IMG/VR virus record: IMGVR_UViG_3300030385_002649
Location: 62,001 to 126,000 of that record
Direction: 5' to 3' (one strand)
DNA: 64,000 bases
Of the stretch, positions 39,278-60,720 are shown piece by piece (within the stretch, counting starts at the first letter, position 1; the number at the start of each line of letters is the position of its first letter). The notes beneath the pieces were generated by a model. That model was not told where the DNA came from. It saw only the letters and a list, made by a program, of their open reading frames with translations, and did no database searches. Made by a program: the position numbers and the translations under genes.

Positions 39278-39288
39278 AGATGGTTCCC

Positions 39289-39869: not shown

Positions 39870-42681
39870 CTGACCGCCCAGCTTGATGCAATAACTTAAT
39901 TATTAAACTAAAAGACTTAGGATCCAAAAGACTAGTTGTTTCACCAACTTGATTAGGATTGTGACTTTGCTCACTCGTATTTTGTTTTACGAATTGTGCA
40001 AGATTACCATTAGAAACAGCCTTCAAGAGTCCTCCTAATAAATAATAAGTCTCGACTGACATATTGCCGTTATTGTGCGTCTTCTCAACATACTGATAAA
40101 ACGCTTTCATGGCTTCAGGTTTTGCGATGCCGGAGGATTTAACAGCATTGAGAATAACAGATTGTTTTCTTCTTGCCTCACGAGTGCTCGGGGTGGCCAA
40201 AGGCGCTTTACTTCTTATCCTTTCTTTTTCCTGATGATCTTTACTATGTCCTAAGGACCGCGTGACAAGGTCTTCATCCTTCTCATCTTCAGACTTAAAT
40301 ATGTCCTTCTCAGCTTGAGCCATCCTATTATTGGTTTTATTGCCCATAAAGTTCTTGTTTTTATACGCTTTATGCCCTCCAGCTTTATTGATAGTATTAA
40401 TTGCCGTCTTAAAGTGCTTGTGGTTCCCCAGTCCGTCTTCTTTGTCATTTAAAGAATTCTTGACAAATTCTATAAGGTTGTTTTCTCCCATAGCTTTCGA
40501 AACTTTATACATTAGGCTATAAGCCTCAGTAGATAAAGACTGTCCCAAATTACGATGAAGAAAATTATCAAAGCTGCGCCTAGCTTTAGGAGACGCAGCT
40601 ATTCCAGACAGTTTGACTGCGTCTAAGAAAACCTTTTGTGCTCTAGATTCTTTTTCCCTTTTTGGAGCCTTTTCTCTAAAGCGAGCCTGCCTACCAGCTG
40701 TAAAATCACCAGCGCCTGGCTGATCCGAAGCGAATTCCCTTTTCTTTTGGGCCAATTCTTTAGGACTCAACACACTCCCCCTGACGTCTTTGCCCCATGC
40801 GGCCTGGCCTTTTCTCTTGGCAATTTTCTGATCTTTATCCTTAGCTGTTTGTTCAGCCTTCTCTAGCTCATCAGGATTAGTGGCTTGTAAAGCCTCACGA
40901 GCTTCTTCTCCGCCTCTCATCTTGACATATTCTTGATAGGCTGGAGAGCCGGATTTTTTCAAAACCCTATGTAACATGCCAGGATCTCTAGCAAGAGACT
41001 TAGCAAGCTTCTGATATATTAACGACATTTGAGCAAGACGAATGTCCGCTTTTGAAAGAGGGCCTCCAAAAGCTTTAGCGATTGCCTTCAATTTCTTCTC
41101 TAATATCATTTCCTCGACGGACTTTTCAAGAATAACCCTATCAATGGACTCATTCACTTGAGACGATCTTTGATATTCAACAACACGAGCTGTCACAAAA
41201 TTGAGGATGTCATTAAAATCCACAACTTTGTTCATGTCTTTAACATCACCATTAGAATACTTCATCAAAAGCTGAGGTTTCCTAGCGACTTTTAATAATG
41301 TTTCAAGATCCTTATTAGCAAGAGACGAAATGATGCCAGAGAGGCTCCCATTATCACTTGGATCAGCCCTTTGGTAAGCTTTTAGAAGGCGGTCTTTAGG
41401 TGTACCGCCGATATACTGTGTAAAGTACGCTCTTGCATTGCCAGGGGTTTCTTCAGTTTTAGAGACAGCATGTCTTAGATTAGGAGAAAATAATTGATTA
41501 TATTCCTGCGCTGCCTGAGCGTCTTCCCCGCTCTTGGCCATATTGCTTGCTGCAGACAAGTATTCCCAGACGTGACTTTCATTAGGAGATTCTATGTTCG
41601 TCCAATAAGGCGCGGAAAGGTCAATGTTAGCGAACTTATAAGCTGGTATTTTAGTGCCATCTGGGCCTTTTTTAAGCCCTCTAACCCTTACAACCAAATT
41701 AGTTGGAGCACGCTTGATGATGTCGATTCTTTTTCTAGCGTGCTCCGAGGCTTTTTGATCGTTTTGAGCCTCAATAGACCCTCCAACTTCGACGCCGTCG
41801 TCACGGGCGTCAGACTTGACAGGCCCTCCGACTGTTCCTTTTGGCTTTTCTTTACTAAACGCCTTAGCGCCTCTCGCCAGATTTCTAGCTTTAACATCTT
41901 CTGGATTAAATTGCAGACCGCGATTTTTCTGCTTGATTGGTGAACCCGGCTCAACATTAGGCTCAGTTGGTCTGGGTGATGCTTTAACTTTAGACTTACG
42001 GTCGCTGAGACTTTGGTTCCTATCTAGTCTAGGAGTCGCTCTAATTTTTTCAATTTCGCTCTGAGTTGGATCTTCGGATTCTTCCTCTTCAGGTGCTTCT
42101 TCAGCCTGCTCTATACCAAGCTGTTTAGCGTAACCTTTGAAAAAATCATTGTTGATACCTATGCTCTTAGCGTCAGAAGACGTTAAGAGACCATAAAATC
42201 CTCCGAGCTGGTTCTTAAAGTTCTCATTGTCTAAAAGATCTGGATTTTCAACTATATTGCCCCAGAGGTCTTTGCCAAATCCAGAAGCGGCCTTAGCCAG
42301 AGCCTTGGTCACCTTTCCTTTTGCGCTATTTCCTCCCCATGACCTTGCAAGAAGAGTAGCAATTTTATCGCGTTTGCTAGGGTTTAGAATGTCCGAGAAG
42401 AATCCGATTAATCTTAGGGAATTTTCGCTATCGCCAGCTTTTAGAACTGCGTCGTGGACTCTCTTGAACCCACCTTTTTCTTTTAGCATGCCGTTGATTA
42501 TGCCGACGCTGGACATTTTTCCTTTTAGCAAGGCACTTAGTGCTTCTACCTTACCAGTATAAGGTGTAGTAGGTTCCTTATCATCTTCTTCTTTGAGAAG
42601 GTCCATATACTCATTGACGATAGAGCTTGCAACAACCCCATTTTCAATGAATGATTTATTAAGCTTGTCTAGAAAATCCAT
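39865..42681 (-). CDS. large basic hypothetical (938 aa), probable internal head/ejected protein
   Basis: Several [ILV]-x-E sites (FIE, VNE, LKE, ILE); duplicated ~65-aa C-terminal unit. Confidence 0.75.
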   Translation of the reverse strand: MDFLDKLNKSFIENGVVASSIVNEYMDLLKEEDDKEPTTPYTGKVEALSALLKGKMSSVGIINGMLKEKGGFKRVHDAVLKAGDSENSLRLIGFFSDILNPSKRDKIATLLARSWGGNSAKGKVTKALAKAASGFGKDLWGNIVENPDLLDNENFKNQLGGFYGLLTSSDAKSIGINNDFFKGYAKQLGIEQAEEAPEEEESEDPTQSEIEKIRATPRLDRNQSLSDRKSKVKASPRPTEPNVEPGSPIKQKNRGLQFNPEDVKARNLARGAKAFSKEKPKGTVGGPVKSDARDDGVEVGGSIEAQNDQKASEHARKRIDIIKRAPTNLVVRVRGLKKGPDGTKIPAYKFANIDLSAPYWTNIESPNESHVWEYLSAASNMAKSGEDAQAAQEYNQLFSPNLRHAVSKTEETPGNARAYFTQYIGGTPKDRLLKAYQRADPSDNGSLSGIISSLANKDLETLLKVARKPQLLMKYSNGDVKDMNKVVDFNDILNFVTARVVEYQRSSQVNESIDRVILEKSVEEMILEKKLKAIAKAFGGPLSKADIRLAQMSLIYQKLAKSLARDPGMLHRVLKKSGSPAYQEYVKMRGGEEAREALQATNPDELEKAEQTAKDKDQKIAKRKGQAAWGKDVRGSVLSPKELAQKKREFASDQPGAGDFTAGRQARFREKAPKREKESRAQKVFLDAVKLSGIAASPKARRSFDNFLHRNLGQSLSTEAYSLMYKVSKAMGENNLIEFVKNSLNDKEDGLGNHKHFKTAINTINKAGGHKAYKNKNFMGNKTNNRMAQAEKDIFKSEDEKDEDLVTRSLGHSKDHQEKERIRSKAPLATPSTREARRKQSVILNAVKSSGIAKPEAMKAFYQYVEKTHNNGNMSVETYYLLGGLLKAVSNGNLAQFVKQNTSEQSHNPNQVGETTSLLDPKSFSLIIKLLHQAGRSV

Positions 42682-42881
42682 TACTTAGACTTACCCTTCT
42701 TCTTTTTTTTCTCGCCTTGAATGACGTTTAAGAACCTATCACGATCTTCATGACCACCTTTTAAGTGGCTCAAATTGCTTCGGCCCTTAACTTTAGGCTT
42801 GGCTTTACCTTTTGGATCCCCGTAGAAATCTTCTGAGGATTGGATGACATCGAGATCTTCGTACAACTTATTTAATTTCAT
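42681..42881 (-). CDS. small basic protein with MKLNKLYE leader
   Basis: ATG42881 overlaps the upstream TGA (ATGA); track start 42917. Confidence 0.7.
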   Translation of the reverse strand: MKLNKLYEDLDVIQSSEDFYGDPKGKAKPKVKGRSNLSHLKGGHEDRDRFLNVIQGEKKKKKGKSK

Positions 42882-43948
42882 CCTGGGTACTTGAACTGTT
42901 CCTTGAGTGGAACGCAAGTTCCCCTTCTTTCGTCAACAATAGCGGCACCAGCTGGTTCTTTGCTATTGTAACGGTTCTTAGATTCATTGAAAGCGCCAAG
43001 GTTTTTCTTGCGCCCACTTGGAACGTCCGTCCAACCGCATTCAACCATAGTTACGCCAGGCTTGTTTCCAGCGTCCTTCATGTCAGCCTCGATGAGGCCC
43101 TCATTAGAATCAACGGACATCATGTCAAGACCAAGGCCACCGCTACCCTGCGTTTTCAATCGGTTAATGTCATCGACAGAGATTTCTAGTTTATGCCTAA
43201 GATCACGATCAGTAACGATCATATACTTGAGAGGCTTTCTTCCAGAATCACCGGCTTTAATGTGTGACATGAGACCAAGAGCACCATTTACTGAATCGGA
43301 GATCCCAAAAGAGATTGTTGGTTGTACTCTTCTTTCTGGAGACCATCCCTCATGGTGGAAACCTTGACCAGCCAGAGTGTTGGACATTAGAATACAACGT
43401 TTAATAACGTCAGCGAAAATCCTCTGTGCCCTATCCTTGTCCGTATCACCCACATAGACGCTGACGGCGAATGTATCACCACCCAATCGGTAACACTCTG
43501 CTCTACTTGAACCGCCAAATTGGCTAGTGATGAGGTTTCCGATATATCCAATGACTGAATTGACTCCAATAGTTCCTAGACCGCTCTTTTCGTTAAGGTG
43601 CCTAGCATCGTCAACGTCGCCAACAACATAAATGAAGTTTTTCAGACCGTTTTCGTTGACATCATCGCTCGCCTCAGCATGCAGGGCCTTGAAAACGTGC
43701 CCGCCCTTTAAGCCAGTTACCACGTCTTTTTCTACTAGGTCTCTTAGCTCTTTATAAGCACTACCCGGGTTAGACTTGGACAAATCGTCTAGTCTTTCTA
43801 ATTCCTCGCACATATTGATGGCTAGGGAATTTTCTACTGGCCTATGTCCTGATACCGGTGGGTACCTGATAGGGTCTAAAGGAAGGTCTGAACTTTCTTT
43901 TAGTACTCCTCGGTAGCTTCTCTTGCCGTATAGGTCTTCTAATTTCAT
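42878..43948 (-). CDS. GGDEF-like (diguanylate-cyclase fold) protein with MKLEDLY leader
   Basis: DVVTGL, GDVDDARHLNE..G, YRLGGDTFAV, TISFGIS. Confidence 0.8.
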   Translation of the reverse strand: MKLEDLYGKRSYRGVLKESSDLPLDPIRYPPVSGHRPVENSLAINMCEELERLDDLSKSNPGSAYKELRDLVEKDVVTGLKGGHVFKALHAEASDDVNENGLKNFIYVVGDVDDARHLNEKSGLGTIGVNSVIGYIGNLITSQFGGSSRAECYRLGGDTFAVSVYVGDTDKDRAQRIFADVIKRCILMSNTLAGQGFHHEGWSPERRVQPTISFGISDSVNGALGLMSHIKAGDSGRKPLKYMIVTDRDLRHKLEISVDDINRLKTQGSGGLGLDMMSVDSNEGLIEADMKDAGNKPGVTMVECGWTDVPSGRKKNLGAFNESKNRYNSKEPAGAAIVDERRGTCVPLKEQFKYPG

Positions 43949-43974
43949 ACGTTATGTCCCAACCTTATGTTTAA

Positions 43975-45272
<1,298 letters not shown>

Positions 45273-45273
<1 letters not shown>

Positions 45274-48200
45274 TAGCTGCCACCGAATCCACCTCCGCCA
45301 AAGTCTTCTCCGCCAAAATCATCGTCCACAGTAACTGTACCGCTAGTTACGTTACGAATTTCAAAAGCTATGTCATCGACAATATTGTTGTCTAAGAAGA
45401 AAGCGAAAGGATTGTTAAATGTTTCATCACCACATCCGAATGTGGTCTGAAATCTTTTTATTTCTTGAGAGCCACCTTCAGCAAGGACCATAAAGCCCTG
45501 ATCGGTAACCTGAATAATCTGACGTTCTACAGTCTCAACTCCGTCTTTAAAGACGCGACGGTTGATAACCTCACCAGATATTTCTTGGCCAGGGACCCTA
45601 GGGTCTTGGACCTGGAGTGTGTAGTCCAACCTGTCGTTGAACGTTTCGAAGATTACTCTATAAATAATGCCATAATCATCGATGAACTTAAATGACCCTT
45701 CTTGAGGGAATCGTTCATCGAAGTCCGTGAGAGGCCCACTGAATACCTCTTTTTCATCCTCGAACATCATCATGTTATTAATGGCGCCGTCCATAATGCA
45801 GGTCTGAGCGCGATATTGCTCATCCAGAATCATTGTGGAGATCAAGTCGACTCTATCACAGTTAAAATCATATGATCCGTCTGGAAGTTCGAAATGGCTT
45901 AAGTGACATCTTTCGATTGTGAGGGTTTCTGGTTCTGCTGTGACATCCGCACTGGTTCCCGTTCCCGTTCCGCCCGAATCGTCTGGGCATTCGAAACTCG
46001 TGCAGCCACAGTCCATTCTGTGTGGCCTATAATCTTCATAATCAAAATCACCAGGTCTGACGCGGACGCCAGAGCCCAGCCTAAATCTTAAAGAAGGGGC
46101 CCCTTCTCCAGTGACAATCAGAGGAAGTCCGAGAGCGATAGCTGGGCCCAATATCGTAATCCCGCCTTCAGCGCTATACAAGTCCTCGTCATATAACGAG
46201 AAACCATACCCTTCAATAGTCTCCCTTGGGAAATCGAAGTCCGTCAGATCTTCCATGTAAGAGCCGAATTCCGCAGGGTATCCGTCGATAAAGTCCGCGC
46301 CCCCGGTTGGCGTCACGCCACCCGTGATGGCTGTCGGGTCGGCTCCGGTTGTTTCGATATTTTCGAGATCCTGTGCTGTCCACACGTCATCCCCTTCAGG
46401 ACATGGGCAGTTACGATCCGCAGACTCGAAAATCGGGTCCTGGAGATCAGTGAAACAAATGAAGTTCTTCTGCTCCCCAAGAGCCTCCTCAGAGAATCTA
46501 AGAGCATCGCTTTTATGGTCGATAGCGTAGACAGGTTGACTACCAAGAGAAAAACCAGTGCTATAACAGAGGCCAGGATCTGCAGAAGACCAAACCGAGT
46601 GCGTCACATCATTCTGAGGGATCAAAGACCCATCATGAACGTCCATGTTTGGAATGTCCGCTGCGATGCCATTTCCGACATAGATCAGATCAGCGTCATC
46701 ATAAGCGATGACTTCCTCTCCGTCAGTTCCAATTTCAATCCTAGCGTTAATTTCCGGAACAGTCAATCCTGATGGGACATCTTCTGGACAATCGTAGTTG
46801 AACACATAATCCCAAGGACGCAACCGATACTCAGGGTGGTTCAGATCACTGATAAGATTGGCCATTGAAACAAACCGATGGCCAGGATAAAACATGTTAT
46901 CCTTGTCAATTTCAAGAGACGGTCTACGAGTGGCGAAGAACCTATTGTTAATAGTGTCTTCGATGTCATCTACGTATGCCCTATCAGTATAATGCAATTC
47001 AGGATTACTGAAAGCCATGACTCTAGTATAACCCTGGTCATGCCCGCTCCGGCGATAATTGGCTATGTTGGTTAAGTCAGGAGCGTTAGGGCCTTGATCC
47101 CCACATGAGAATTCATCGTTTTGTATGAGCGGTGTTAAATAATACAGCCCCAGCCCTGGCATTAGGTCGCAAGGACGGCATCTCCAGGACTCCGGAAGAA
47201 TCATGGTCAGTTCGGTCTCAGCAACCTGTTCTACTCTGCCCTTATAGCAATAGTCGGCAACGTTATTTTCAACATCACAGAGCTTGGCACGATCATCTTC
47301 AAAGTGATCAAAGTCTTTCTCTCCATTGCTGACAATTCTGTCTTGTCCGAAAGGGTTAAACTGGCAAGAATCGCCATCTGGTTGTCTAATTTGGATTCTT
47401 GAGGCCGATTGTAGAATTGGGAGAAGAGCGTCTGGAACTTCATGAGTCCCGTCTAAGTTCTTCCATGCTGCATGTTCTTGCTCGAGGAGGTCGAGGATTT
47501 CATCTCTGTGGTCTGTATCGGAGCCTTTGAAGCCTCTATCTAATGAGAACTCCGAACAGACGAAATCTGGATCATCCAGGTCGGGGATGTCGTTAGGGAT
47601 AACCGGAGGGGGTATTTGGATGTTTCCGAGATCGCTATCTGCGTCTTGGGCTAAACGGCCTCCAACACAGAAATCTTGAACGTTATAAATCTCTGGACAT
47701 TCGACTGTGAAGGTGATTTTTCTGAGCAACGAGTGGAATGCCTTGAACTTGAACAAGAATTCAAGAAGGAACTCGTAGACGTCTGATGTTGGTTGTTCCC
47801 CATTCTTGAACAACAAAATGTTAATGTCGAAGCGGTTGCTTCTCAAATCGGCCAACGCTGTAGGAAGAACGATCTTAGTTCTTTCATACGTGGCAAAGAC
47901 GTAAACCACTGTATCTCTATCGAACGAGAAATAATGGTCTAGGTCTAGGCTTACTTCATTAGTGTCAGGATTAAATCCAATACCTTCAGTACTAACAACA
48001 GGAATTCCACGTTGTGTTTCGTCGATACCTCCAACATCTTGTGAAATCAGAACGGTCGAATGACCGATTGACCCTACAGCAATTGACTCTTGAAAGTCCG
48101 ATAATTGGAAGCCTTCTGGAGTCAGAGAGCATCTTCCGGTGCTGAAAGACTCTACGTCAGTAGCAGTAGCATCCAAGGCATTTTGGAGGGCTATTTCTTG

Positions 48201-49409
48201 CGGTGTTCCTCTTGTCACAAAATAAGCATCAAGAGTGATATTACCAAGAGCTTTGAATAAAAGTGGAACGGTTAGTTGTCCGAAGCCTGGAGAGGAATAA
48301 TCGGCTATCAGAGGCTCGGAGACGCATAGCGTTTCTGTCGTGATCTCTTGATCTTCAATATCGCTTGGCAGTTGCTCGTCTGGAGCAATGAACCTTTGTC
48401 CATCCTTGCTAAACCATAAGTTAGCAACATCGATAGTGAATCCGAAAATATCGAAAAGTTCCCTAATCGCCCTCTTGGACCCTTTTAGTTGTTGGAGTTT
48501 TCTGCCATTTCTCAACATTGAACGGCGAACTTGGTCCGTTGTGCTTGGGAAATACGGTAGATCCAACCCGATGAGGTTGGCTAGGTACGGGATGTACTGC
48601 ACTGGGATCTTATCGATCCAGTTAACGCCTCTTAATAGTTCTTGCTCGTCGAAAATGTCCTGAAGGGCATCTGCGAATGGCCTATAGAAAGCAACTGTTC
48701 CGTCTTTGTCAATCGATGGGCTGTTAAAATAGAGCGCTGGGCTCCTGCGGATCATTGCGAAGTGAAGGTCGCCCGGGTGATTGATATAACTTGAAAAACG
48801 TGACTTGATAGCGCGGCTAGTATCAATACAAACCAATTCGCCGTTGGATGAAATGATTCTCTTGTAGTAAGAGCATTCCCAAACGAAATTGTACTTTCCT
48901 TCTGGGAGATCTACAGTCTCAATAATGAACGGAGTAACGTCATAATAATCGGCATCGTAATAATATGGAATTCTGTCTTTTGAACCTGGCCCTGATCTGC
49001 CGAATGCGCCGATGACGCCTCTCATTAGAGTGATCTCCATGAGGTCGCCGTTGTTGACGTCGCTATAAGTTTTTTCGTCTCCTGTTGCTGGATCGAAAAA
49101 GCGTTGGCCTGTGACGTCTATCTTTACTGATGACAGTTCTTCTGTACTAACTTCTCTTCTGAATCTTTCAAAGTTCGGTACGAAGATTCCTTGGTTTTGA
49201 ACTCCAGCTACTGGAACCTTTCCGGGTGCGTCTTCAATGTAGAAAGCGCAGTCGGTGAGGCCAGTGTCATTGATCGGAATACCGTCAATAGTACGCCTAA
49301 ATGGTACTACAAGCACTAACGGCAGGTTTACAGGCTGATAACCTGTCCTGTTTGTATTGATTGGAAATAATGAGAAGGTAGGTTGGTACCTATCAACAAC
49401 TTCTGCCAT
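45273..49409 (-). CDS. large baseplate/tail protein with P2 gpI-like segment (1378 aa)
   Basis: [15 protein letters not shown]...[30 protein letters not shown] typical of baseplate wedge proteins. Confidence 0.75.
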
Positions 49410-49716: not shown

Positions 49717-49736
49717 TGTGCGGTATATTTGGTGTC

Positions 49737-50207: not shown

Positions 50208-50217
50208 ATTATAAATT

Positions 50218-51825
50218 TCACTGAGGGTTGTTGAAACTTCTATCGATTCTTTGTGATATAGGAATTGAAGCCGCTGCTGAGGGCATAGGAAAAGCCCTAA
50301 AATATACTGGGTCATAATCAACATTAAAAATGTTGATATCAATACTTAGCAAAGCAGCAAGCGAGAACGCAAAAGATCTATCATCAAGTGTACCACCGGT
50401 AACAGTTTCAATTCCTGCTACTTCTGTTGTAGTCCCGGCATTATACACACGAACTTCAGTGTCTTCACGCATTCCGGTTAACGTTAGTGTTACGTTGTTC
50501 AGAATATTGACAGTAGCGCCACCAAGTTTCTTAAATGTTGGAGTTGTGCCACCATCGATAGTTAGATTATATGTTCCGGTAGCGGCTGTAAGGTCCAGAG
50601 CGGCGCTATCGGTCGTGTCAGCGCCGTAGCCGGTCCATGTCATTTCAGTGAATGTATAGTTGCCCGCAGTTGCTATTTCAACTGCGTGTCCTGCCCCACC
50701 TTGAATAAATTCAGTGTTGTTGAGATCGGTAGTAGTTCCAAAAGTAGGATCCTGTAGAGTTGCAATACTAGTAAGAGACACGGTCGTCACGACACACCCC
50801 TCGACATTTGCACTACCCTGTGTAAATGCTGCCGTTTCGATATTGCATGATGCAATATCGACTTTACTTGTAGCAATAAAGTCTGCTAAATTTTGAAAAT
50901 TACAACCAGTAATGTCCGCCTGTGCCGTTGCTGTAGTCCCAATAAATTCAACAATGGCACGGGTATCGACAGTACCACCCGTTGTTCCCCGACTAATGAA
51001 CGTGCTGTTGGAAATGCTGATAACGGTGCTGGCATTCTCAAGGTTGATGTCCAGACCAAAGAAACCGACCGAATTGAGGAACTCAGCATCAGGCCAAACG
51101 ACAACCTCTCCCGAACTCGTGAACTCGGCTCCGGTTCCGCTATCACCAACGGTGAGGACACCGGTAACGAAAAGAATACCGTTGCGCGTCGAGACGATCC
51201 CCCAGCGATTAGTGCCCGCAGAGTCCTCGTCGGTCGTAGCGAAGAGGGCGAAGTTGCCGTCAGTGCCTCCGATTCCGTCAAGGCAGGTCAGCCCGGTACC
51301 GCTAGTGATGTTGTCAACCGCATCACTAGCAACATTCTCTGATTTACTAGTAGCGCTGAAATCACATGTCCACGAGTAGAAGTCGATAGACGAAAGTGTT
51401 AAGCCACCATTAACAGCGCTAGCGTTGCCCCCATTTGGATCAATCGGAATGATAAGCCAACCACCCAGTAGCGGATAATCATCATTTCCAGCCACGTAGT
51501 AATCATCAGAGTTACCAGCACCTCCTGTTCCAATAGATAATACGCCTCCAGGTGCAGCTTTAGCTAGCAAAGATGACGAGTTAGTAGCAATACATTTTGC
51601 TATCCAGACTAATGGAGTCGTATAATCAGTTGCTGCTCCTAAATTCAATTGCTGACCACGCAGCGAAGTACCAACCTTACTAGAAATAGAGAATGATCCT
51701 TGATAGACAAAGTCGGGCTCGGCGACGGCCTTGGCGCCACCACCACCAATGCCTGTCCAGACCGTTCCGACAGCGTCAGCGTCGTTGACGCGTGTTCCGT
51801 CGAACGTGACAGCAGCAGCAGCCAT
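50218..51825 (-). CDS. virion structural protein, Gly/Thr-rich beta-rich (535 aa)
   Basis: Composition and position in the structural block. Confidence 0.7.
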   Translation of the reverse strand: MAAAAVTFDGTRVNDADAVGTVWTGIGGGGAKAVAEPDFVYQGSFSISSKVGTSLRGQQLNLGAATDYTTPLVWIAKCIATNSSSLLAKAAPGGVLSIGTGGAGNSDDYYVAGNDDYPLLGGWLIIPIDPNGGNASAVNGGLTLSSIDFYSWTCDFSATSKSENVASDAVDNITSGTGLTCLDGIGGTDGNFALFATTDEDSAGTNRWGIVSTRNGILFVTGVLTVGDSGTGAEFTSSGEVVVWPDAEFLNSVGFFGLDINLENASTVISISNSTFISRGTTGGTVDTRAIVEFIGTTATAQADITGCNFQNLADFIATSKVDIASCNIETAAFTQGSANVEGCVVTTVSLTSIATLQDPTFGTTTDLNNTEFIQGGAGHAVEIATAGNYTFTEMTWTGYGADTTDSAALDLTAATGTYNLTIDGGTTPTFKKLGGATVNILNNVTLTLTGMREDTEVRVYNAGTTTEVAGIETVTGGTLDDRSFAFSLAALLSIDINIFNVDYDPVYFRAFPMPSAAASIPISQRIDRSFNNPQ

Positions 51826-52304
51826 TATTCAACCCCTCGGCCGATAAGACGCATGGGGTAGCGCTCGGGGTAGGAGCAGACGAGCACAGTCTGGTTCCGC
51901 TCGCGGCTTACCCTCTCAACCGCTAGCCGGGCCTCGTGCGTATCCTGTGCGCCCTCAGAGGTAGGAATTGCCCGCAGCGCGTTTTCAATTGGCAGTACGT
52001 CGTCAAGTACAACGCCAACGAGGTCAGGCCGATCCTCTTCCGCACCATAGCCTCGAATCCACATGCAGGTGTAGCCGCAGGCAGGCTTTGGCCTATTGGC
52101 ATAGTCTGTACAGTTAAGGCCGTCGTCACAGATCTCGTCCTTGAGCTTGCTGCACGGAACAAGTGGAGGTTTTTTGAGGGCTTCAATCGAGAAATAGGTA
52201 CAGCATACTGTGCAACTACCGCAGTTTCGGCCTTTAACAGGCTCAAATGCTTTCTTGATTGCCGCAAGCTGCAATTTTCTACCTTTAGACTTTTTACTTG
52301 GCAT
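51825..52304 (-). CDS. YkgJ/FliB-like CxxCxxCC cluster protein
   Basis: CGSCTVCC...C...C..Y..RP..C.Y.C.W; ATG52304 likelier than the track start 52325. Confidence 0.8.
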   Translation of the reverse strand: MPSKKSKGRKLQLAAIKKAFEPVKGRNCGSCTVCCTYFSIEALKKPPLVPCSKLKDEICDDGLNCTDYANRPKPACGYTCMWIRGYGAEEDRPDLVGVVLDDVLPIENALRAIPTSEGAQDTHEARLAVERVSRERNQTVLVCSYPERYPMRLIGRGVE

Positions 52305-52329
52305 GGGGATCTCCAATCCTTCCACAATC

Positions 52330-52337
52330 TATTTTTA
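52330..52337 (-). promoter_or_regulatory. TAAAAATA putative late promoter
   Basis: Upstream of the YkgJ-like gene. Confidence 0.45.
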
Positions 52338-53147
52338 AATCAATCCGGGAATGAGAGAAGTGCGATTTCCAATGATGTTGACTAACTCTCCGTAGCTTCC
52401 AACAGTTGTTGGAGTAGTCGCAATAGTCCAAACCGCATTTGCGATAGCGTTATTGTCAACTGCAGCTGTGGCGGTTCTAGCTAGAACCACCATTTGGTCT
52501 CCTGCTGAAGGCGCAAGAGGAAAATCAGGACTGACGAAAATTGTTCCATCAGATGTGTAATCCGAGATAGTCCGAGCAAGGATTATAGGAGCGGTTCCAA
52601 GAGTTCCAATCCAAATGACCAATTGACCATTGAAAAAGTCATCAGGATAATCAGCGTTCCCAGTAGGAATGACTCCCTCGCTAAGGCTCGTAGATGCTAT
52701 AACGGTAAATTGCTCCGATATGAGAGTTGCAAAAATCGTCGAAACATCGCTTTCGATATCGGTAACAATGTTTTCCACATTATTAAGAGAAGTCTGGATA
52801 TCAGTAATCGTTGTAGCACCTGCAATATCGTTCAGATCTTTTTCAGCTACATTTAATACTTTACTAAATGCCGTTCTAATTTTCGGTTTTACAGATGAAT
52901 CAATTTGAACAACAACACCATAATCACCTATCCCATTGGCCAATAAAAAAGCTGAAGTAACATTAAAATAATAAAACCCAGCCTTCTGCGTAGATTCTGC
53001 AACTACAAAAGCATCAGTTGCAGAATCATCTCCGTCAACTATGGTAGCAATAAAGTCAGAAGGTATCATCCCAGTTCTGAGATTGCCTTTAGAATCTATG
53101 ACAGAAAACCAACCTCTAAATCCAGTTGAATCCTTAGTAAACCACAT
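52335..53147 (-). CDS. probable virion structural protein (270 aa)
   Basis: ORF in the structural block; its C-terminal pattern recurs in 53147..53944. Confidence 0.7.
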   Translation of the reverse strand: MWFTKDSTGFRGWFSVIDSKGNLRTGMIPSDFIATIVDGDDSATDAFVVAESTQKAGFYYFNVTSAFLLANGIGDYGVVVQIDSSVKPKIRTAFSKVLNVAEKDLNDIAGATTITDIQTSLNNVENIVTDIESDVSTIFATLISEQFTVIASTSLSEGVIPTGNADYPDDFFNGQLVIWIGTLGTAPIILARTISDYTSDGTIFVSPDFPLAPSAGDQMVVLARTATAAVDNNAIANAVWTIATTPTTVGSYGELVNIIGNRTSLIPGLI

Positions 53148-53944
53148 TAAGACACCCCTCCCCTATTGACATCATGTTTGTTAAGTATAATTATCGAAGC
53201 GCCATCTGACGGGACAAAAGGAAGAGGATCAATCAAATCAATTTGTCCCGTTGAGAAATACTGGTCTATTTGGCGAGTTGCCACATTATTTCCAACTGAA
53301 TCAATGACAATTATAGAAGAATCGTCATAATATCCGTCGGGTTTAATTAATAACGTTTGTAAGGACGAGTTTGTGCTCACATTGGTACCAGCATTATCAA
53401 CCATGCTTGTGCCTGAAATTATAGCATCCTGTAAATTTAAAACAACATCTCCGATCGATCCAGCGATAATGCTATTAACGCTAACGTCCCAAACAGCCTG
53501 AGAAATTTCAGCAGCTGTTATTGTAGCTTCAACAAGGTTATCAACAACCAGAGTAGAAACTGTTGAAGTAGCAAAGGGAACATCCCCAACCGTAATAAAA
53601 GGAGGGTCGCCGGACTCGGTGAAAAGGTTACCAGTGAAGTTGATACCGTGATCCAACACAATGCGCCAGCCGTTAATAAGGAAGAACGTTCTTCCTAGAA
53701 ATTCACCGCCGGGCAACGGGTCACCACCAGTTGACCTAAAAGCAGCGACCCACTTCATGTTGATCGCGCTCGCGATCAACATCCATTCTTTCCATGCGGA
53801 ATAAAGGTCGATTCTAACGTCAATTTCGGTAATATCAATAGGTATAGTTATAAGACGGTTAAAACCATCAAAGTTGACTTTATGAGCTAAATCCCAAAAG
53901 TCCCAGAAGTATCCATAGGTATGATGCATAACACTAGATATCAA
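53147..53944 (-). CDS. probable virion structural protein (265 aa)
   Basis: DLYSAWKEW...GGDPLPGG...FFLINGWRI resembles a segment of 55566..58310. Confidence 0.7.
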   Translation of the reverse strand: MISSVMHHTYGYFWDFWDLAHKVNFDGFNRLITIPIDITEIDVRIDLYSAWKEWMLIASAINMKWVAAFRSTGGDPLPGGEFLGRTFFLINGWRIVLDHGINFTGNLFTESGDPPFITVGDVPFATSTVSTLVVDNLVEATITAAEISQAVWDVSVNSIIAGSIGDVVLNLQDAIISGTSMVDNAGTNVSTNSSLQTLLIKPDGYYDDSSIIVIDSVGNNVATRQIDQYFSTGQIDLIDPLPFVPSDGASIIILNKHDVNRGGVS

Positions 53945-55553
53945 TCCCTGTAAAGCTAAATTTTACTGTAGTATCACCTGCTGTAGGCTCTAAGGATTCC
54001 ATTGTTATTGTTAAATTATCTTGGCTATCGTCAGCATTTAATCTGCCAGCAGTGCCAAGAAGATTGAAATTTGGCGGCATGGGCAAATTATGGCCGCCAG
54101 GAGCCAAATACCAATCATATATTAAGTATCCTCCGCCAAATGTACCAGTTAAATTAACATCTCCCGCATTGTCAATGTCTATTTGACTCCATACCCCACC
54201 AGTTACAGTAGAGAATGTGTACATTTGAATATGGCACGCCTGTCCGGTAACAAAACATCTTAACGATTCAGGAACAATCGTCTTATTGTTCCTAATCCCA
54301 TTTATTGCCAATGTTGGTCGCCAAGATGCAGCAAAAGCCTCTCCACTAAATGTTCCAGCGCTTTTTACTGTCCATTTGACAGATCGCCTCTCTAAAGTAG
54401 GAACAATCTTTCCTTCCACTTCAACTTGAGCGCAAGTAAGCTTTAGCCTACTTGGGCTCACGACAGGAGTTATGTTCTCTATTTCTAATCTAATTGGCAA
54501 CGTGCCAGAAGTCATATAAGGGCGATCTAATGAGTTTGGGTTATGAAAATCATGTATTAAGATTCTCTCTCCAGCAGGCGAGAAAATCCCAAAGCGTACA
54601 CGGCCAGCGCCGAGCCAGGCAAAGTCAATCCAGTAAATGTTGACATTTGTTACATCTAGCAGAACATTGCTGGCATTGGCCTCGTCCCTACTGCCATCAA
54701 GTTTGTCTTCCCCCCAGCTGCCTTGAAGCACTCTAGTTTCTATTACAGACCCAGATGTGTTCGACCTTTGAACTACACAAAGGTCGGCGCCAAGTTGCTC
54801 AAAATACAACCCATTAAAATCATCGAAATACCCCCAACGCCTACGAAGCCCAGCCTTCCCGTTATCTCCACATGTGACAGTCATCTCAATAAGCTGTCCA
54901 AATCCAGGCTGGTAAATGTGGTAACGGTCTGTAGTAGATCTTACCATATCGCCAGAATCTATACCTATATCTAATGCAATGGAAGACTCATCTGGTAAAT
55001 GAGTAACATCTACTGCTGGAGCTGTCCCACTTACCTCGTGGCTCCACTCTGTGCTATCCATATCATAGTGAAAAGTATAAGCAGCCAGCTGTTCGCTAGG
55101 GGCTACTTTAGATGCTCCGAAAGCACTTAATTGTTGAGAACCGTCAGTAAATCTAACAAAAGCTGACCCATTTCTGTCAACTCTTTGCCCGAATGTTGGA
55201 TTATTGGCTCCAAGCACAATGTGGCCTGGAGGGTAAAATGGGATACTAGTTGTAACTTCGGCGTACTTGGTAGCATTAACATTTAAATCGTCATTGGGCG
55301 TAACATCTTGGACCGTAGATGTTATGCTGGGATTTACATAGATTGTGCCGCTAGCAGTTAAATTGCCAGGTCTTAGAGCTATTACTGTTCCAACGAAGTT
55401 ATTTCCTGGTGCTGTAATTTCATCATCAACAACGAAGTCTGTGACGCCGTTCTTGTAATCTATAGCTAGATATACACCTGTGACCATCCTCTTGCCAGCT
55501 CCATCTGGCGGGATTCTGATATAAGAATTTGGTCCAGTGTCGAGATCTGCCAT
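53934..55553 (-). CDS. phage virion structural protein (539 aa)
   Basis: YQPG...WGYFD..NGLYFE...W.EDKLDG...IYWIDFAWLGAGRVRFG, a pattern I recall from uncultured tailed-phage proteins. Confidence 0.75.
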   Translation of the reverse strand: MADLDTGPNSYIRIPPDGAGKRMVTGVYLAIDYKNGVTDFVVDDEITAPGNNFVGTVIALRPGNLTASGTIYVNPSITSTVQDVTPNDDLNVNATKYAEVTTSIPFYPPGHIVLGANNPTFGQRVDRNGSAFVRFTDGSQQLSAFGASKVAPSEQLAAYTFHYDMDSTEWSHEVSGTAPAVDVTHLPDESSIALDIGIDSGDMVRSTTDRYHIYQPGFGQLIEMTVTCGDNGKAGLRRRWGYFDDFNGLYFEQLGADLCVVQRSNTSGSVIETRVLQGSWGEDKLDGSRDEANASNVLLDVTNVNIYWIDFAWLGAGRVRFGIFSPAGERILIHDFHNPNSLDRPYMTSGTLPIRLEIENITPVVSPSRLKLTCAQVEVEGKIVPTLERRSVKWTVKSAGTFSGEAFAASWRPTLAINGIRNNKTIVPESLRCFVTGQACHIQMYTFSTVTGGVWSQIDIDNAGDVNLTGTFGGGYLIYDWYLAPGGHNLPMPPNFNLLGTAGRLNADDSQDNLTITMESLEPTAGDTTVKFSFTGIDI

Positions 55554-55565
55554 AGGCTACCAGCT

Positions 55566-58310
55566 TTATGTGCTATAGTTACGTTCGAGAGCGTTACCAA
55601 CCGCAATTGTCTGGGAGTTAACCTTTCCAATAGTTTCGTTGACCAGAACGTATTGGGCCAAGTCATCGCCGATTGCTACTACAACAACGTTAGCATCAGT
55701 ATCCGGAGTTCTACCTCCCTGAGCGTTGTTGGTATAATCGAAAGATCGACTAATGTTTCCAGCAATTGTGGTGAAGTCCATGTCGACATTGCTAGCATCG
55801 TCAACGATGATTGCTCCGTTACTATCGAATTCATCACCGTTAGCTGGTGTTCCATCGGGATCAGCGAAGAATGCAACTAATCTCTTGAAGCTGGAGTTGA
55901 TCAAGTTGTTGTTAACAGCGAAGATCAATCCAACAAGGAAAGCGTTGTTTCTATCATCACCAGTCAAGTCACGGAACGTAACATTGTTAGACTCAGTTGT
56001 TGAAAGATCATCTGGGAAGAGGTCAAGCGTGGTACCGTTAGGAGAAGCGAAGCTCATCAATAGGGCAGTAATGTCTCCACGTTCAATCCCAGTCGATCCG
56101 TCAATATCAGATGTCAAGCGCAGCTTCCACTGTAAATATTGGAAAATCTGTGATAGGTCACCAGAGTTAGCGAACAACCTCCAGTGGAAAGGATATGCTA
56201 CAGAGTTAATCGTTCTAACAATGCCGGTCTCATAAGCAAGAACCGCTGCGGTGTCCGTAGCATCTGCTGTAAGAAGTTCCTCAGCAATCAACGTTATAGT
56301 TAACGCTACGCTTGCTGAGATAACAAACTGTCCATCGTTAGCAGAAACTGTAGCGCTTGTAACTGTTACAGCGCCACCGACATCATAACCGTCCGTGACC
56401 CAAGACCCAGCAGCACGTGTAATCGTGTCAGGGTTGGAATCAACGAATGACGGATCGTTGGCAACATCACCTTGAGTAGTCTCGAAACGCTGCAGGAACA
56501 TTCCTGGGCGGAAAACCCTGAAAGACTGAGCAGTCTGGGTGGTAAAGACTTGGTCACTAGTGTCGAGAGTAATAACTGTCGCGGTCGCACTAATCACCTT
56601 GTAATAGCCAACATGCGCAGCTACACCAGAGTAAATCTCAACAATGTCGTCTGCTACAACAATTCGGTCACCGATAGCTGTATCAGTAGTGAATGTTCCA
56701 CCAGCATCAGTTAGAGTACCAGTAACCCCGGTAGCGTCCGCGATAGCGCCAATAGCGCTACCAACATCTTGCAATGGAGTCCTGGCATCATAAGTCTGAG
56801 TCGACTCACCGCCAGTATAAGTAAGCAGAGGATCCTTCCAAAGAGTTACTACTGTATCAGAGTCTACACTCTTTACAACATAGCTGCCTGCGTCAGAACC
56901 AGTAGAGATGACAAAAGCATCTCCAGTTCTTAGAATAGCAAGCGTACGAGCAACTGTGGCAGTAAATCCGCCAGTGGCACTAGTAAATGTGAAGGCTGTA
57001 GTGTCAGCGGTTGGCGCTGTTTCAGTAACACCATCAGTAGTAGTTAGAAGCGACTCTGATTGTTGAAAAATCTCACCAGTAGCCGTACCATCGCCAGCCA
57101 TGACGCCATCTTCTAAAAGAATAGCGGGGTCTACGGCGTGCGATAGAGGAAAACGGTTAACAAGAGCTTCAAGAACCGTAACGCCAATTTCTGTTAGGCC
57201 AGCTTGAGCGTATGTACGAGCTTTCTTACGAACACGAAGTTCTAAGAAACGTCTGTGGTCAACTTGGACCACAGCTAGAGTGTCGGCACCGTTTGCGGTA
57301 AACGTGGCAGCACCGAATGTCATTGTAGAGTCGGTTCCAGTAGGTACTGTAAGGATTGGCCCAAACGTGCCATCATTAGCGACATTCTCTGCCGCACGAA
57401 TGATGACGTAATCGCCAACACGATAATTATCTGTTTCCCAACTACCACCATCTTGTCGTTGCAGAGTGGTGGTACCGAAGATGAACCCAGTACCACTATC
57501 AGGACCAACATCTGGCCCGGTAACTAGAACAGCCTGGTTAGCAGGACCTGTAAGTTTCATGTCTGTAGGAGTAGCTGTCGTATCACCTTGCTGGTAATAA
57601 ATCTGAGCGTCAGCGTCGACGGTACCAAGAGTAGCAACCCCAATATAACGACGAAGAATGTTGCCAGTGGTATCTTGCTCCTGCCATCCACCAGTTCTAA
57701 CTAGGTCGCGAGGAACACCCTCATCATCAGAAGTCTCCACGGCGTTAACAGCAGCGAAAGACCAAGCTGATGTAGCATCACCGTTAACACCACCAAGAAT
57801 CATCTGCTCACGAGTAATAGCGGTAAATGGGAACGTGAACTGGATCAAGTCCTCAGCGTTCCCCAAGCCTCCAGCAAGTTCACGCCACTCTTCCTTAAGG
57901 AAGGAATAAAGAGCCTGTAGAGTAACACCATCTGAAACTGCAACCGGAGTTCCACCTGTAGCAAGCTTAGCATTAACTCTATACGTCAGGTCAGCCGCCG
58001 TTGAAGCCGGAATTGTTCGATCGACCACGAATGAAGTAGCTGCAATGGTGCTGACTACTCGATAATGACCGATAATCAAGCCGTCGTCAGCAGGATCACT
58101 GATAATAGTCAGTACATCACCTACCTCGACACTATCGGTGACGTAATCGCCATTAGTAGTATCAGTAAAAGTAGTGGTGCCATCAGAGTCGCCCGTTTGT
58201 TGGAGCGTACCTCTTATTGTATCTTGACCTCTTAGAGAGATAGTTTGTGCAATTGGGTCGACGGCTACTTGATAGCGGTCTAGTGAGTCTGGGTCTGTTA
58301 CAATTGTCAT
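55566..58310 (-). CDS. large Thr/Asp/Gly-rich virion structural protein (914 aa)
   Basis: Repeated beta-rich modules (GD..TI...GHY.VV...T...D); structural block. Confidence 0.75.
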   Translation of the reverse strand: MTIVTDPDSLDRYQVAVDPIAQTISLRGQDTIRGTLQQTGDSDGTTTFTDTTNGDYVTDSVEVGDVLTIISDPADDGLIIGHYRVVSTIAATSFVVDRTIPASTAADLTYRVNAKLATGGTPVAVSDGVTLQALYSFLKEEWRELAGGLGNAEDLIQFTFPFTAITREQMILGGVNGDATSAWSFAAVNAVETSDDEGVPRDLVRTGGWQEQDTTGNILRRYIGVATLGTVDADAQIYYQQGDTTATPTDMKLTGPANQAVLVTGPDVGPDSGTGFIFGTTTLQRQDGGSWETDNYRVGDYVIIRAAENVANDGTFGPILTVPTGTDSTMTFGAATFTANGADTLAVVQVDHRRFLELRVRKKARTYAQAGLTEIGVTVLEALVNRFPLSHAVDPAILLEDGVMAGDGTATGEIFQQSESLLTTTDGVTETAPTADTTAFTFTSATGGFTATVARTLAILRTGDAFVISTGSDAGSYVVKSVDSDTVVTLWKDPLLTYTGGESTQTYDARTPLQDVGSAIGAIADATGVTGTLTDAGGTFTTDTAIGDRIVVADDIVEIYSGVAAHVGYYKVISATATVITLDTSDQVFTTQTAQSFRVFRPGMFLQRFETTQGDVANDPSFVDSNPDTITRAAGSWVTDGYDVGGAVTVTSATVSANDGQFVISASVALTITLIAEELLTADATDTAAVLAYETGIVRTINSVAYPFHWRLFANSGDLSQIFQYLQWKLRLTSDIDGSTGIERGDITALLMSFASPNGTTLDLFPDDLSTTESNNVTFRDLTGDDRNNAFLVGLIFAVNNNLINSSFKRLVAFFADPDGTPANGDEFDSNGAIIVDDASNVDMDFTTIAGNISRSFDYTNNAQGGRTPDTDANVVVVAIGDDLAQYVLVNETIGKVNSQTIAVGNALERNYST

Positions 58311-58311
58311 A

Positions 58312-58548
58312 TTAAACCTCTGCCAATTCTATGGGTTCGCCGCGCTGGTCGGCCTTTTTTCTAGCGTAACGCAAGCACTTTCCACATTGTAAACAAAGGG
58401 ATGTTCCATCTTTCAGAAGATCAATATAGTATTGTTCACTAGATTGGATGAATGTAGGACATAACTTGTCGCTACATTCTTTCTCGCCACCACCATTTAT
58501 GAGGGGCTTCATTCCAAAAAAGGTTCCTTCTTCTTGTTCTTCATTCAT
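58312..58548 (-). CDS. small Zn-ribbon hypothetical
   Basis: CSDKLC...CLQCGKC. Confidence 0.6.
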   Translation of the reverse strand: MNEEQEEGTFFGMKPLINGGGEKECSDKLCPTFIQSSEQYYIDLLKDGTSLCLQCGKCLRYARKKADQRGEPIELAEV

Positions 58549-59036
58549 TCGGTTACAACCTCTGTCACAATCTGATATTTTTTATATAAAGCGCGACGTT
58601 GCACTATCAAATTATTCACAATATTTTTGTACGCAGACTCTTTAGAAAGACCTTGGGCCCAGGCTCTCTTAAAAACCCTAATTTCTCTATCATGGACGTC
58701 GCATAACTTGCATGGTTCATCTCGAATCGGTTTCCCAGATTTGATCATATGAACAAAACATTGATCTCCGCCAGGAGGCCAGCTTTCATACTTCCTATGC
58801 TTACCAGAACACACCATGCATAAATTACAAGACTCACATTTCGCAGCTACTCTTCTAATATCGACTTCTTGCGTTAGTCCTACCCTACCTTTATATGCTG
58901 TTTTTACTGTCCCTTTAGTATCTTCTATTTTCTTGTTTAATTCAATGAGTTCTTTGGTTGGTATCTCAGCCACAACTGGAATTTTAGAAAATTCACCATC
59001 AGGCCCTCTAAAAAACAGCATAGAGATAGTATTCAT
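58545..59036 (-). CDS. Cys-rich hypothetical protein
   Basis: CESCNLCMVC...C..H...CKLCDVH; ATGA overlaps. Confidence 0.65.
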   Translation of the reverse strand: MNTISMLFFRGPDGEFSKIPVVAEIPTKELIELNKKIEDTKGTVKTAYKGRVGLTQEVDIRRVAAKCESCNLCMVCSGKHRKYESWPPGGDQCFVHMIKSGKPIRDEPCKLCDVHDREIRVFKRAWAQGLSKESAYKNIVNNLIVQRRALYKKYQIVTEVVTE

Positions 59037-59692
59037 GCAATGGTCTCCACAGAAATCAGTCTTGAACCAGAATATATTAGAGCTTTGCTGAGAGTAGCTC
59101 CATCCGACGCCCTTGTTAACAACGTGGACGTCAGATTGTTCCCAGTATACGCCAACGATTTGGCAAATAACAAAGTTGTTTTGGTATTATCCTCATAAAT
59201 GTTTACTGAGATCAAATTGTTCCCAGTATACAATAACTCTTTAAAATTAGAGAGATTACTTAGTTTAAATTCTAACTCTAACTCTAAATCTAATTTATTA
59301 TCTATAGACCATAATGATTGCAATCTCCAATCGCCACTTGCTTTATGAGTTAGAAGATAATCTCCAACATCGCTGATGGTCGCTGAAGCCGCGTCATTTA
59401 CAGTCCCAGAAGATGTAAATGTGAGACTGTTACTTTCAATATCGTCATTTTCAACGTGTAGGAAGAACAGTCTCCCAGGAAGTTCTGTAGCGTCTAAAGT
59501 AAGGGTGCGGTCTGCTGATAAATTCCCGGAAGAGCCCAAATAAATTGGTGCGTCTTCTTCTAAGTTAGATGTTGCTGCATTTTGTAGTAATGAGTCGCAG
59601 ACGCCGTCAACCTGAGGTCCAACATTTAGGTCATAAAATTGACCAGATAGACCTCCATGAATTTGGACCGACTCAAGAAACGACTTGGCCAT
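59033..59692 (-). CDS. probable structural protein (219 aa)
   Basis: C-terminal YTGNNL repeats; TAAAAATA upstream. Confidence 0.65.
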   Translation of the reverse strand: MAKSFLESVQIHGGLSGQFYDLNVGPQVDGVCDSLLQNAATSNLEEDAPIYLGSSGNLSADRTLTLDATELPGRLFFLHVENDDIESNSLTFTSSGTVNDAASATISDVGDYLLTHKASGDWRLQSLWSIDNKLDLELELEFKLSNLSNFKELLYTGNNLISVNIYEDNTKTTLLFAKSLAYTGNNLTSTLLTRASDGATLSKALIYSGSRLISVETIA

Positions 59693-59696
59693 ATCT

Positions 59697-59704
59697 TATT
59701 TTTA
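59697..59704 (-). promoter_or_regulatory. TAAAAATA putative late promoter
   Basis: 4 nt upstream of ATG59692. Confidence 0.5.
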
Positions 59705-60331
59705 GCTGATTATTACTCGACCACTAAATGTGGGCGCTAAAGGAGCCTTGATTAGTCTAATCAGCCCAGTTACAAGGTTGACCGACACTTCTAAATCGAC
59801 TCCGACAATTATTGGGCTACCATCGCTTCTCCATACATTTAAGTGAAATGAGCGATTTGTCCCATATTCATGTGGCCCAATATCGCCAGGCACTAAAGGG
59901 CCCTCGTTTGGAATATGAATTTGGTTAACAGTGCCATCTGTCCAATCTGAAGCGGCAAATGTGAATTCGCTAGCTTGTCCAGTAAGTAACTCTAAAATAG
60001 AAACTCTGCGGTTTAGATCAGAGCATTCTAAAAGCCAGTCAATGGTATCGCACATATTTTGTTGTAAAACTGTTTGATAAACTAGCTGTGCTCGTGGGCC
60101 TTCTAGATTAACTCCAAACCTACCGCCGCCTGGGACTGTACTATCTGGGATGAAACCGTAGAGGTATTCAACGTTCACACCGTCAGAAAATGTGATAGTT
60201 CCCCCACCGCCGCGAACTAAAATGTCGGTTACTTTCACTCCAGATTTTACAGGCAACAAAGAATTGTTGATGCCGCTAAAGTTTTTCGAGGTGGCTGCAA
60301 ATTTCCAAAAGTCTTCTGGACATGGCTGCAT
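59702..60331 (-). CDS. probable structural protein
   Basis: Track 59702..60355 (TTG); ATG60331 avoids overlap. Confidence 0.65.
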   Translation of the reverse strand: MQPCPEDFWKFAATSKNFSGINNSLLPVKSGVKVTDILVRGGGGTITFSDGVNVEYLYGFIPDSTVPGGGRFGVNLEGPRAQLVYQTVLQQNMCDTIDWLLECSDLNRRVSILELLTGQASEFTFAASDWTDGTVNQIHIPNEGPLVPGDIGPHEYGTNRSFHLNVWRSDGSPIIVGVDLEVSVNLVTGLIRLIKAPLAPTFSGRVIIS

Positions 60332-60345
60332 GGTAGTACTCCGAC

Positions 60346-60720
60346 TTAAGTACAACTAATTAGATTAATCAACAATCCTAATAGTTGTTTTACTTCTGAT
60401 CTCGAAACAGGACCATCGTCTTCTTTAATCTCGTTGAACCGGGCCCTAGCGCCTTGGACGCCAGCTTGCTCCATGCCTTTAAGCATTTGTTCAACCCATT
60501 GATTGTCTTTAAAATTGCCAAGTTCTTTAGCGCCGTCAATGAATTTAACTTTGGTATCCTCTGGAATCCCTCTGTTCTTTTCGTCATCATCAATAGTGAT
60601 TGTTATTTTGGCTTCGTTTAAAACCCCGGCGCCTGACTTCAAGACATAATCCTGAAGCTTGGACATATATTCCAAGAAAACCTTTTTGTCAGTCTCCTTA
60701 TATAATTTATCCAGTTTCAT
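60346..60720 (-). CDS. hypothetical with MKLDKLY leader
   Basis: MKLDKLYKE...FLE...VLNEA. Confidence 0.7.
   Translation of the reverse strand: MKLDKLYKETDKKVFLEYMSKLQDYVLKSGAGVLNEAKITITIDDDEKNRGIPEDTKVKFIDGAKELGNFKDNQWVEQMLKGMEQAGVQGARARFNEIKEDDGPVSRSEVKQLLGLLINLISCT

Follow-up and report, generated by a model that had tools for sequence, protein, structure and literature searches.

An eight-residue N-terminal leader shared by unrelated proteins of a marine T4-like jumbo phage, a candidate capsid targeting sequence

A 64,000-nucleotide (nt) stretch of viral DNA (the window), bases 62001-126000 of one 370,804-bp virus record with direct terminal repeats and rated complete (IMG/VR record IMGVR_UViG_3300030385_002649), encodes several otherwise unrelated proteins that begin with the same short peptide. 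The record comes from a marine metagenome and, judged by its genes, is an uncultured marine T4-like jumbo phage. We suggest, with a probability of roughly 60%, that the peptide, an octapeptide of the form M-K-L-x-x-[L/I]-x-E, does the same work as the capsid targeting sequence (CTS) of phage T4, the leader of the internal proteins IPI, IPII and IPIII that was reportedly the subject of work by Mullaney and Black in 1996. What we observe is an enriched motif that is conserved throughout the clade, a homologue of the T4 prohead protease in the same genome and indirect signs of an [LI]xE cleavage specificity.

An earlier, sequence-only reading of the window had pointed to four N-termini with a common leader, and all four are present where it placed them, on the minus strand:

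5654..6061 (-), 135-amino-acid (aa) basic protein, isoelectric point (pI) 9.7, starting MKLYTLHE followed by Q
42681..42881 (-), 66-aa basic protein, pI 9.8, starting MKLNKLYE followed by D
42878..43948 (-), 356-aa protein, cargo candidate, starting MKLEDLYGKRSYRGVLKE (MKLEDLY)
60346..60720 (-), 124-aa protein inside the virion-structural operon, starting MKLDKLYKE

That the carriers are otherwise unrelated was borne out for the whole genome, since with the leader trimmed no similar pair was found (BLASTP E <= 1e-3). The leader is indeed shared, while the motif by which it had been defined, MKL[DEN]xLY, was too narrow, the conserved core being M-[KR]-L-x-x-[LI]-x-E. Genes of the whole genome were called with a crude caller of our own, which gave 506 genes. 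The genome-wide N-terminal motif search that the sequence-only reading had proposed was run on these and returned about ten proteins starting M-[KR]-L-x-x-L-[YHF], against about 0.14 expected from composition; the full octapeptide MKLxxL[YH]E opens five proteins of this genome. MKL is its commonest N-terminal tripeptide (18/506), and Leu at position 6 together with Tyr, His or Phe at position 7 occurs in 7 of the 18 MKL proteins compared to 5 of the 488 others (Fisher p = 1.4e-8). The carriers outside the window are:

MKLSALYED, 145 aa
MKLSELFKEE, 84 aa
MKLNALHEA, 161 aa
MKLDVLHDD, 103 aa
MRLSKLHQD, 78 aa
(M)MKLSHLHES, 97 aa

The Leu codons of the leader vary (TTA, CTG, CTC, CTT, CTA) and the DNA 5' of the starts is unrelated, hence the leader is conserved as protein and not as DNA. 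The residues that follow position 8 are polar or charged (EDLDVIQSSEDF, EQSGEPFPQ) with no hydrophobic core of 10-15 residues, as would mark a Sec or lipoprotein signal peptide, and the genuine lipoprotein-like starts of this genome, for example MKKYLLILAVLVFSGC, look unlike the leader. When N-terminal octapeptides were clustered without bias, the MKL family was the largest cluster in each of the four genomes used; similar pairs exceeded those in column-shuffled controls by a modest margin, and we take this result as supporting rather than decisive.

By tblastn, at least 159 IMG/VR contigs carry related capsid proteins, several of these contigs being 270-408 kb long, and 80 of them, 75-90% identical, were kept. 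Four large relatives were retrieved nearly whole and passed through the same gene caller. (An alternative genetic code, proposed for the relative G004 on account of its few gene calls, was rejected, as long open reading frames (ORFs) cover 88% of it under the standard code.) Each of the four has its own set of carriers, mostly non-orthologous proteins. In five genomes the pattern M[KR]L..[LI].E opens 3-6 proteins per genome with about 0.1 expected, an enrichment of about 50-fold in each (Poisson p 2e-4 to 9e-10). Searched at the DNA level with a degenerate pattern for the tag, 20 relatives gave 25 matches and one control match, 1.04 Mb around capsid genes gave 19 and one, and two further fragments gave 4 and 0, and 2 and 0. 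The same pattern was at chance level in T4 (two matches, one control) and in the 595-kb phage LR756511 (three matches, two control), and one 234-kb relative had no match. Altogether at least 15 related genomes have the tag, on proteins that are not orthologous, and the 52 distinct instances, when pooled, have the following composition:

position 1: M in 52 of 52
position 2: K in 46, R in 6
position 3: L in 52 of 52
position 6: L in 26, I in 26
position 7: Y in 14, H in 13, then S, F, L and others
position 8: E in 42 of 52
position 9: D, S, A or G in 38 of 52
position 10 onward: no conservation

The invariance of M1, [KR]2, L3 and [LI]6 is by construction, because the search patterns demanded these residues, and for most of the pooled set E8 as well. 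Support for E8 that is independent of this comes from the carriers of a motif defined by an aromatic residue at position 7 only, 14 of 22 of which have it. Across the pooled set [LI]-x-E occupies residues 6-8 in 42 of 52 instances. T4 gp21, the prohead protease, cuts after L/I-x-E (PMC9026906); since residues 6-8 of the conserved core are [LI]-x-E, the T4 gp21 motif closes the tag.

We inspected the window carriers and their orthologues for such sites. The sequence-only reading had placed an [ILV]-x-E or Y-x-E site near each start; [LI]-x-E is there at residues 6-8 of the 66-aa and 135-aa proteins and at 16-18 of the 356-aa protein, the 124-aa protein is ambiguous, with an unconserved Y-K-E9 or a more distant L-N-E36, and Y-x-E is no known gp21-type site. 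The leader of the 66-aa protein would be its residues 1-8 (nt 42858-42881) and that of the 135-aa protein its residues 1-8 (nt 6038-6061), with L-Y-E8 and L-H-E8, respectively, the sole [LIV]xE of each. In the 356-aa protein the putative leader is residues 1-18 (nt 43895-43948), ending L-K-E18; E18 does not vary among its homologues, whose N-termini read MRLDHLYSGGPRRVLAEE and MRLDNLNGRRSLRLLFEE. The 124-aa protein has the hydrophobic part of the leader without E8, its closest conserved [LI]xE being V-L-N-E36, and if it is cut there the propeptide would correspond to nt 60613-60720. Orthologues retain the pattern while their residues change: the 356-aa family reads MKLEDLY..VLKE, MRLDHLY..VLAE and MRLDNLN..LFEE; the 66-aa family has the leader forms MKLNKLYE, MKLTALFE and MKLRLLWE, its syntenic orthologues starting MKLTALFEYLDV and MKLRLLWEYVAV with FYGDPK in common; and the orthologue of the 124-aa protein in the relative G001 starts MRLNKLHRDD and keeps VL[NS]E, followed by KITITID. 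A search for related loci with the 356-aa and 124-aa proteins gave nothing past G001.

The form of the leader also differs between genomes. Position 7 is aromatic in five of five M[KR]L..[LI].E instances here and in none of six in the relative G002, where the usual form is MKLxxIxES. The 135-aa protein and its G002 orthologue (31% identity), the sole orthologue pair linking these two genomes, begin MKLYTLHE and MKLNSIIE, each with the form of its own genome. Since both the position 7 counts and this pair follow the genome, they suggest, from few cases and without establishing it, that the leader co-evolves with a receptor common to the carriers of a phage.

Two further observations concern leader-bearing ORFs in relatives. 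A family in L144, L151, L157, L200 and L150 has GHW right after the tag (MKLxx[LI]xE[AGD]GHW...NYPN); its members are 58-62-aa proteins, and a 266-aa protein begins with the same sequence. Some relatives have a leader-bearing ORF as the next gene downstream of the capsid gene (L010:12977; L049:11686, 12368); the ORF after the capsid gene of G001 has just 23 aa (MRLSLLHETKEPVPKKAAAKGEG) and may be a tiny packaged peptide or no gene.

A 225-aa gp21-family (S77) prohead protease is encoded at genome positions 159711-160388 (PF03420, 69.9 bits; phrog_207, E 1.2e-45) and aligns with T4 gp21 (PDB 5JBL, E 5.7e-12); compared to wild-type T4 gp21, the aligned His of ..DHPP.. and Ser of ..GISSRG.. are conserved, and its N-terminal QFLQE8 corresponds to QLLIE9 of T4. 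The capsid protein belongs to the gp23 family (PF07068, E 8.5e-80; genome 157269-158804 (-)), and a portal protein is present (phrog_213). In the 45 relatives inspected, out of 79 aligned, a conserved [LIV][LIF]E closes the capsid propeptide right before the mature start [DE]xTTTG[DN]IADFTRF; the capsid protein has six [LI]xE sites, five of them within its first 72 residues. Between the protease and capsid genes, in the position of T4 gp22, lies the gene for a 251-aa helical protein that is a scaffold candidate. It contains 12 [LI]xE with 3.3 +/- 1.6 expected, the top density among proteins of at least 100 aa in the genome, and T4 gp22 has the same pattern (16 with 5.9 expected). The end of the propeptide and the sites of the scaffold candidate suggest, indirectly, that a specificity of the protease for [LI]xE may be conserved in the clade.

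Around these genes we also note a 1106-aa ORF with no family match between portal and protease (genome 160428-163748 (-); L201:5428-8748), a place taken in T4 by gp67 and gp68, which are small core proteins. The capsid gene is followed directly by the gene for a 613-aa protein with HNH and DNA-binding domains that looks like a mobile element (genome 155319-157160 (-)). The unusually long 1230-aa ORF adjoining the portal gene (genome 165747-169439 (-)) is a putative large terminase by position only and may hold an insertion or intein. A second, weak S77 protease match (135-aa ORF, E 0.02; genome 224094-224333 (-), L002) could be a diverged paralogue as reported for SPN3US, or noise.

The proteins that carry the tag are mostly small (median length 132 aa in the pooled instances) and basic. 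Among carriers of up to 200 aa, 60% have a pI above 9, compared to 20.5% of other small proteins of the same genomes (p = 2.4e-8). The internal proteins IPI, IPII and IPIII of T4 (NC_000866) have a pI of 8.9-9.5, and in each the sole [LIV]xE ends the leader. We considered the sole site at position 8, found in five carriers, as a further argument and rejected it, since shuffles explain it (small carriers, 19 with 22 expected). Pfam and PHROG scans gave no significant family for any of the ten carriers here or for eight from relatives, and an ESM Atlas search with the 124-aa and 135-aa proteins gave nothing usable.

The T4 leader is the nearest known counterpart. In the T4 CTS, MKTYQEFIAE, targeting requires residues 4 and 7 and processing requires residues 8 and 10 (PMC9026906), and outside the CTS the T4 internal proteins are diverse, with no other conserved part (PMC3012670). 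The leader described here resembles it in being short, N-terminal and placed on unrelated, mostly small basic proteins, in its M-K start, in a hydrophobic or aromatic face of i/i+3/i+4 spacing (Y4/F7/I8 in T4) and in ending with [LI]-x-E; the gp21-family protease, the [LI]xE-rich scaffold candidate and the gp23-type capsid protein with its propeptide add to the likeness. It differs in having 8 residues rather than 10-19, L3/L6 in place of Y4/F7, with the Glu directly after the hydrophobic pair, and about 5-10 carriers per genome rather than three, and its targeting function is a proposed one. Because it shows no similarity to MKTYQEFIAE and is shorter, we do not class the leader with the T4 CTS as a relative by descent.

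Other giant phages also have a gp21-related protease that cuts after Glu. In phiKZ, 201phi2-1 and SPN3US such a protease removes propeptides of head and ejection proteins that are thought to target the prohead, and their paralogues gp53 and gp54 have a conserved 15-residue N-terminus in common (PMC5694885). Those propeptides, however, are mostly longer than 100 residues with the motif [S/A/G]-x-E or A-x-E, whereas here the leader has 8 aa (18-36 aa in two cases) with L or I at P3 in 52 of 52 instances, as the pattern required, and no common short tag is spread there over many unrelated proteins. In phage P1 an N-terminal signal of DarB suffices for a protein to be packaged in the capsid and delivered (PMC9024508); it differs in having 30 residues, in serving one protein through stepwise Dar assembly and in having no link to a T4-type protease motif. 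We found no description of the present tag in the searchable literature.

By analogy with T4, we propose that the leader acts in core binding, encapsidation, cleavage and injection. The hydrophobic face of the leader (L3, L6 and often an aromatic residue at position 7, spaced i/i+3/i+4) would bind the scaffold core during prohead assembly, and the carrier protein would thus be enclosed in the prohead. The gp21-type protease would then cut after E8, with L or I at P3 and E at P1, freeing the mature protein, mostly small and basic, inside the head, from which it may leave together with the DNA on ejection. For some carriers that keep the hydrophobic part the cut would fall further downstream, in the 356-aa protein at L-K-E18 and in the 124-aa protein perhaps at L-N-E36, and the carrier with D8 is perhaps left uncut. 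A bolder version of this proposal holds that the label reveals from sequence all head-loaded, injected proteins (5-10 per genome), that its form co-evolves with scaffold and protease, and that the enzyme with the GGDEF fold described below is an injected nucleotide-signalling effector; this we put forward tentatively and regard as rather doubtful.

The strongest alternative, though an unlikely one, is that the tag is a mere cutting site for the prohead protease without a targeting role, for example for activation or for unblocking the N-terminus; the carriers would then enter the head otherwise, or would be processed but uninjected accessory proteins of the core like T4 gp67 and gp68. [LI]6 and E8 are indeed the most conserved features, early [LI]xE sites are also found in T4 gp67 (MEGLIE6), gp68 (MLLIPE6) and gp24, and the protease itself begins MSQQFLQE8. 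A bare site, however, needs none of M1-K2-L3, which is equally invariant at fixed spacing (M1 and L3 being pattern-required). Moreover, carriers without E8 still retain MKLxxL[YHF], as if the hydrophobic part had a role of its own, and in T4 the determinants of targeting and processing sit adjacent in one short leader (PMC9026906).

Slightly less probable again is that the tag serves as an address or a regulatory signal aimed at a target other than the capsid, such as a degron, an adaptor tag or a peptide recognized by another phage enzyme or chaperone. In favour of this, the conserved motif has no known receptor, the carriers are dispersed over the genome with many outside structural modules, and a complex prediction, itself not evidence either way, gave the protease no support. 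Such an address would, however, end by coincidence in the very motif that marks the family of this phage's prohead protease, and the enrichment for basic carriers resembling internal proteins would be a second coincidence; T4 internal-protein genes are likewise scattered over the genome. A very improbable third explanation, in which the peptide has no function and reflects a preference at initiation (AAA or AAG as codon 2, an A/T-rich start), the commonness of MKL or duplicated 5' ends, can appeal to the frequency of that tripeptide and to the general favouring of Lys at position 2, but it leaves L6, position 7 and E8 unexplained and is largely refuted by the codon variation, the unrelated upstream DNA, the approximately 50-fold enrichment, the low control counts (1 to 25 and 1 to 19) and the retention of the pattern in orthologues despite residue changes.

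We return to the reading of the leader as a capsid targeting sequence. The sequence-only reading had arrived at a T4-like packaging tag, and all computational tests on motif, protease and cargo type that ran to an answer fit this; the depletion of [LIV]xE from the mature parts of carriers was not significant. Several points weigh against it. That last comparison gave 45 sites observed and 45 expected after shuffles that keep composition. Only M-K is shared with MKTYQEFIAE or MKTFKEF..., and E8 is missing in 10 of the 52 instances, including two of the three main examples of the sequence-only reading. There is no specific arms-race signal, because the carriers vary no more than other small genes; hypervariability of the cargo had been considered and was rejected, since the closest complete relative has an orthologue for just one of ten carriers, but the baseline is as low, at 25% for all genes and 15% for small ones. 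The complex prediction for the protease and the 66-aa cargo scored 0.00, which is no answer and not evidence in either direction. The carrier counts rest on crude gene calls, a search for sequencing runs returned the source marine metagenome only and no RNA run, and no late promoter could be assigned in the genome.

In the promoter search the T4 late promoter TATAAATA had 11 copies in the whole genome, none placed before structural genes. Seven-mers such as GTAAATA, AAACATA and AAAGATA are 6-11x enriched upstream of gene starts, and some starts, among them those of two leader genes, have a TAAA-N-ATA box 10-18 nt ahead of them (window 6071-6080 and 43965-43975); as a usable promoter it was rejected for being too sparse.

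In an AlphaFold2 (AF2) model of the 356-aa protein (mean predicted local distance difference test score, pLDDT, 65.6) residues 1-37 are disordered, and the core matches GGDEF domains of diguanylate cyclases (Foldseek E 3.5e-8; target template modelling score, TM, up to 0.74). No Pfam or PHROG family matched, and Pfam misses GGDEF in the window's copy. The signature reads GGDTF here, so that cyclase activity is uncertain; homologues have GSDSF, HGDEF and SGDEF. On the strength of the model, it is a predicted phage nucleotide-cyclase-like gene within a virion module.

The window carriers lie within a minus-strand virion operon with tail-fibre, tail and virion structural proteins. The neighbouring genes that bear on this are:

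39865..42681 (-), 938-aa protein, conserved partner downstream of two leader genes, no Pfam or PHROG match
43975..45273 (-), 432-aa tail-fibre-like protein directly upstream of the 356-aa gene, PHROG tail-fibre families, best E 3.5e-21
53934..55553 (-), 539-aa virion structural protein of the same minus-strand operon, given as context, phrog_1645, E 8.2e-69

The tail-fibre-like protein matches collagen-like minor-tail as well as tail-fibre PHROG families, and because its gene adjoins upstream, the two leader genes appear to sit in a virion (late) module. The ATG of the 66-aa gene overlaps the stop of the 356-aa gene (ATGA), for which reason this start is preferred over an upstream TTG and translation of the two is probably coupled. 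The gene order tail fibre, 356-aa, 66-aa, ~940-aa, acidic and ~256-aa protein is kept in two other contigs, including the ATGA overlap. This six-gene block spans 38510-45273 (-) of the window, L141:3608-12526 and L142:1669-7750. The ~940-aa protein has the N-terminus MDFLDKLN or MGILERLD and the acidic protein is rich in D, E and G; these two and the ~256-aa protein could be further head-internal or ejection proteins.

No cultured relative was found: among deposited phages the capsid protein is matched best by that of a 595-kb phage, itself uncultured (39.7% identity), and Megablast of the window region against cultured phages gave no match. The capsid protein is about 30% identical to those of cyanophage T4-likes. 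If the tag does target the capsid, sequence alone would be enough to list which proteins are packaged, and perhaps injected, by phages that cannot yet be grown. In T4 this class of proteins includes anti-restriction and host-takeover factors. It would also mean that the T4 style of loading, a short tag joined to a prohead protease site, has been kept in a distant lineage of giant genomes with the sequence of the tag replaced, and that an 8-residue tag whose form seems to shift with the genome offers a compact system for the co-evolution of signal and receptor. Such a tag could serve to load foreign proteins into capsids. As one carrier appears to have a GGDEF fold, the phage may deliver a nucleotide-signalling enzyme along with its DNA.

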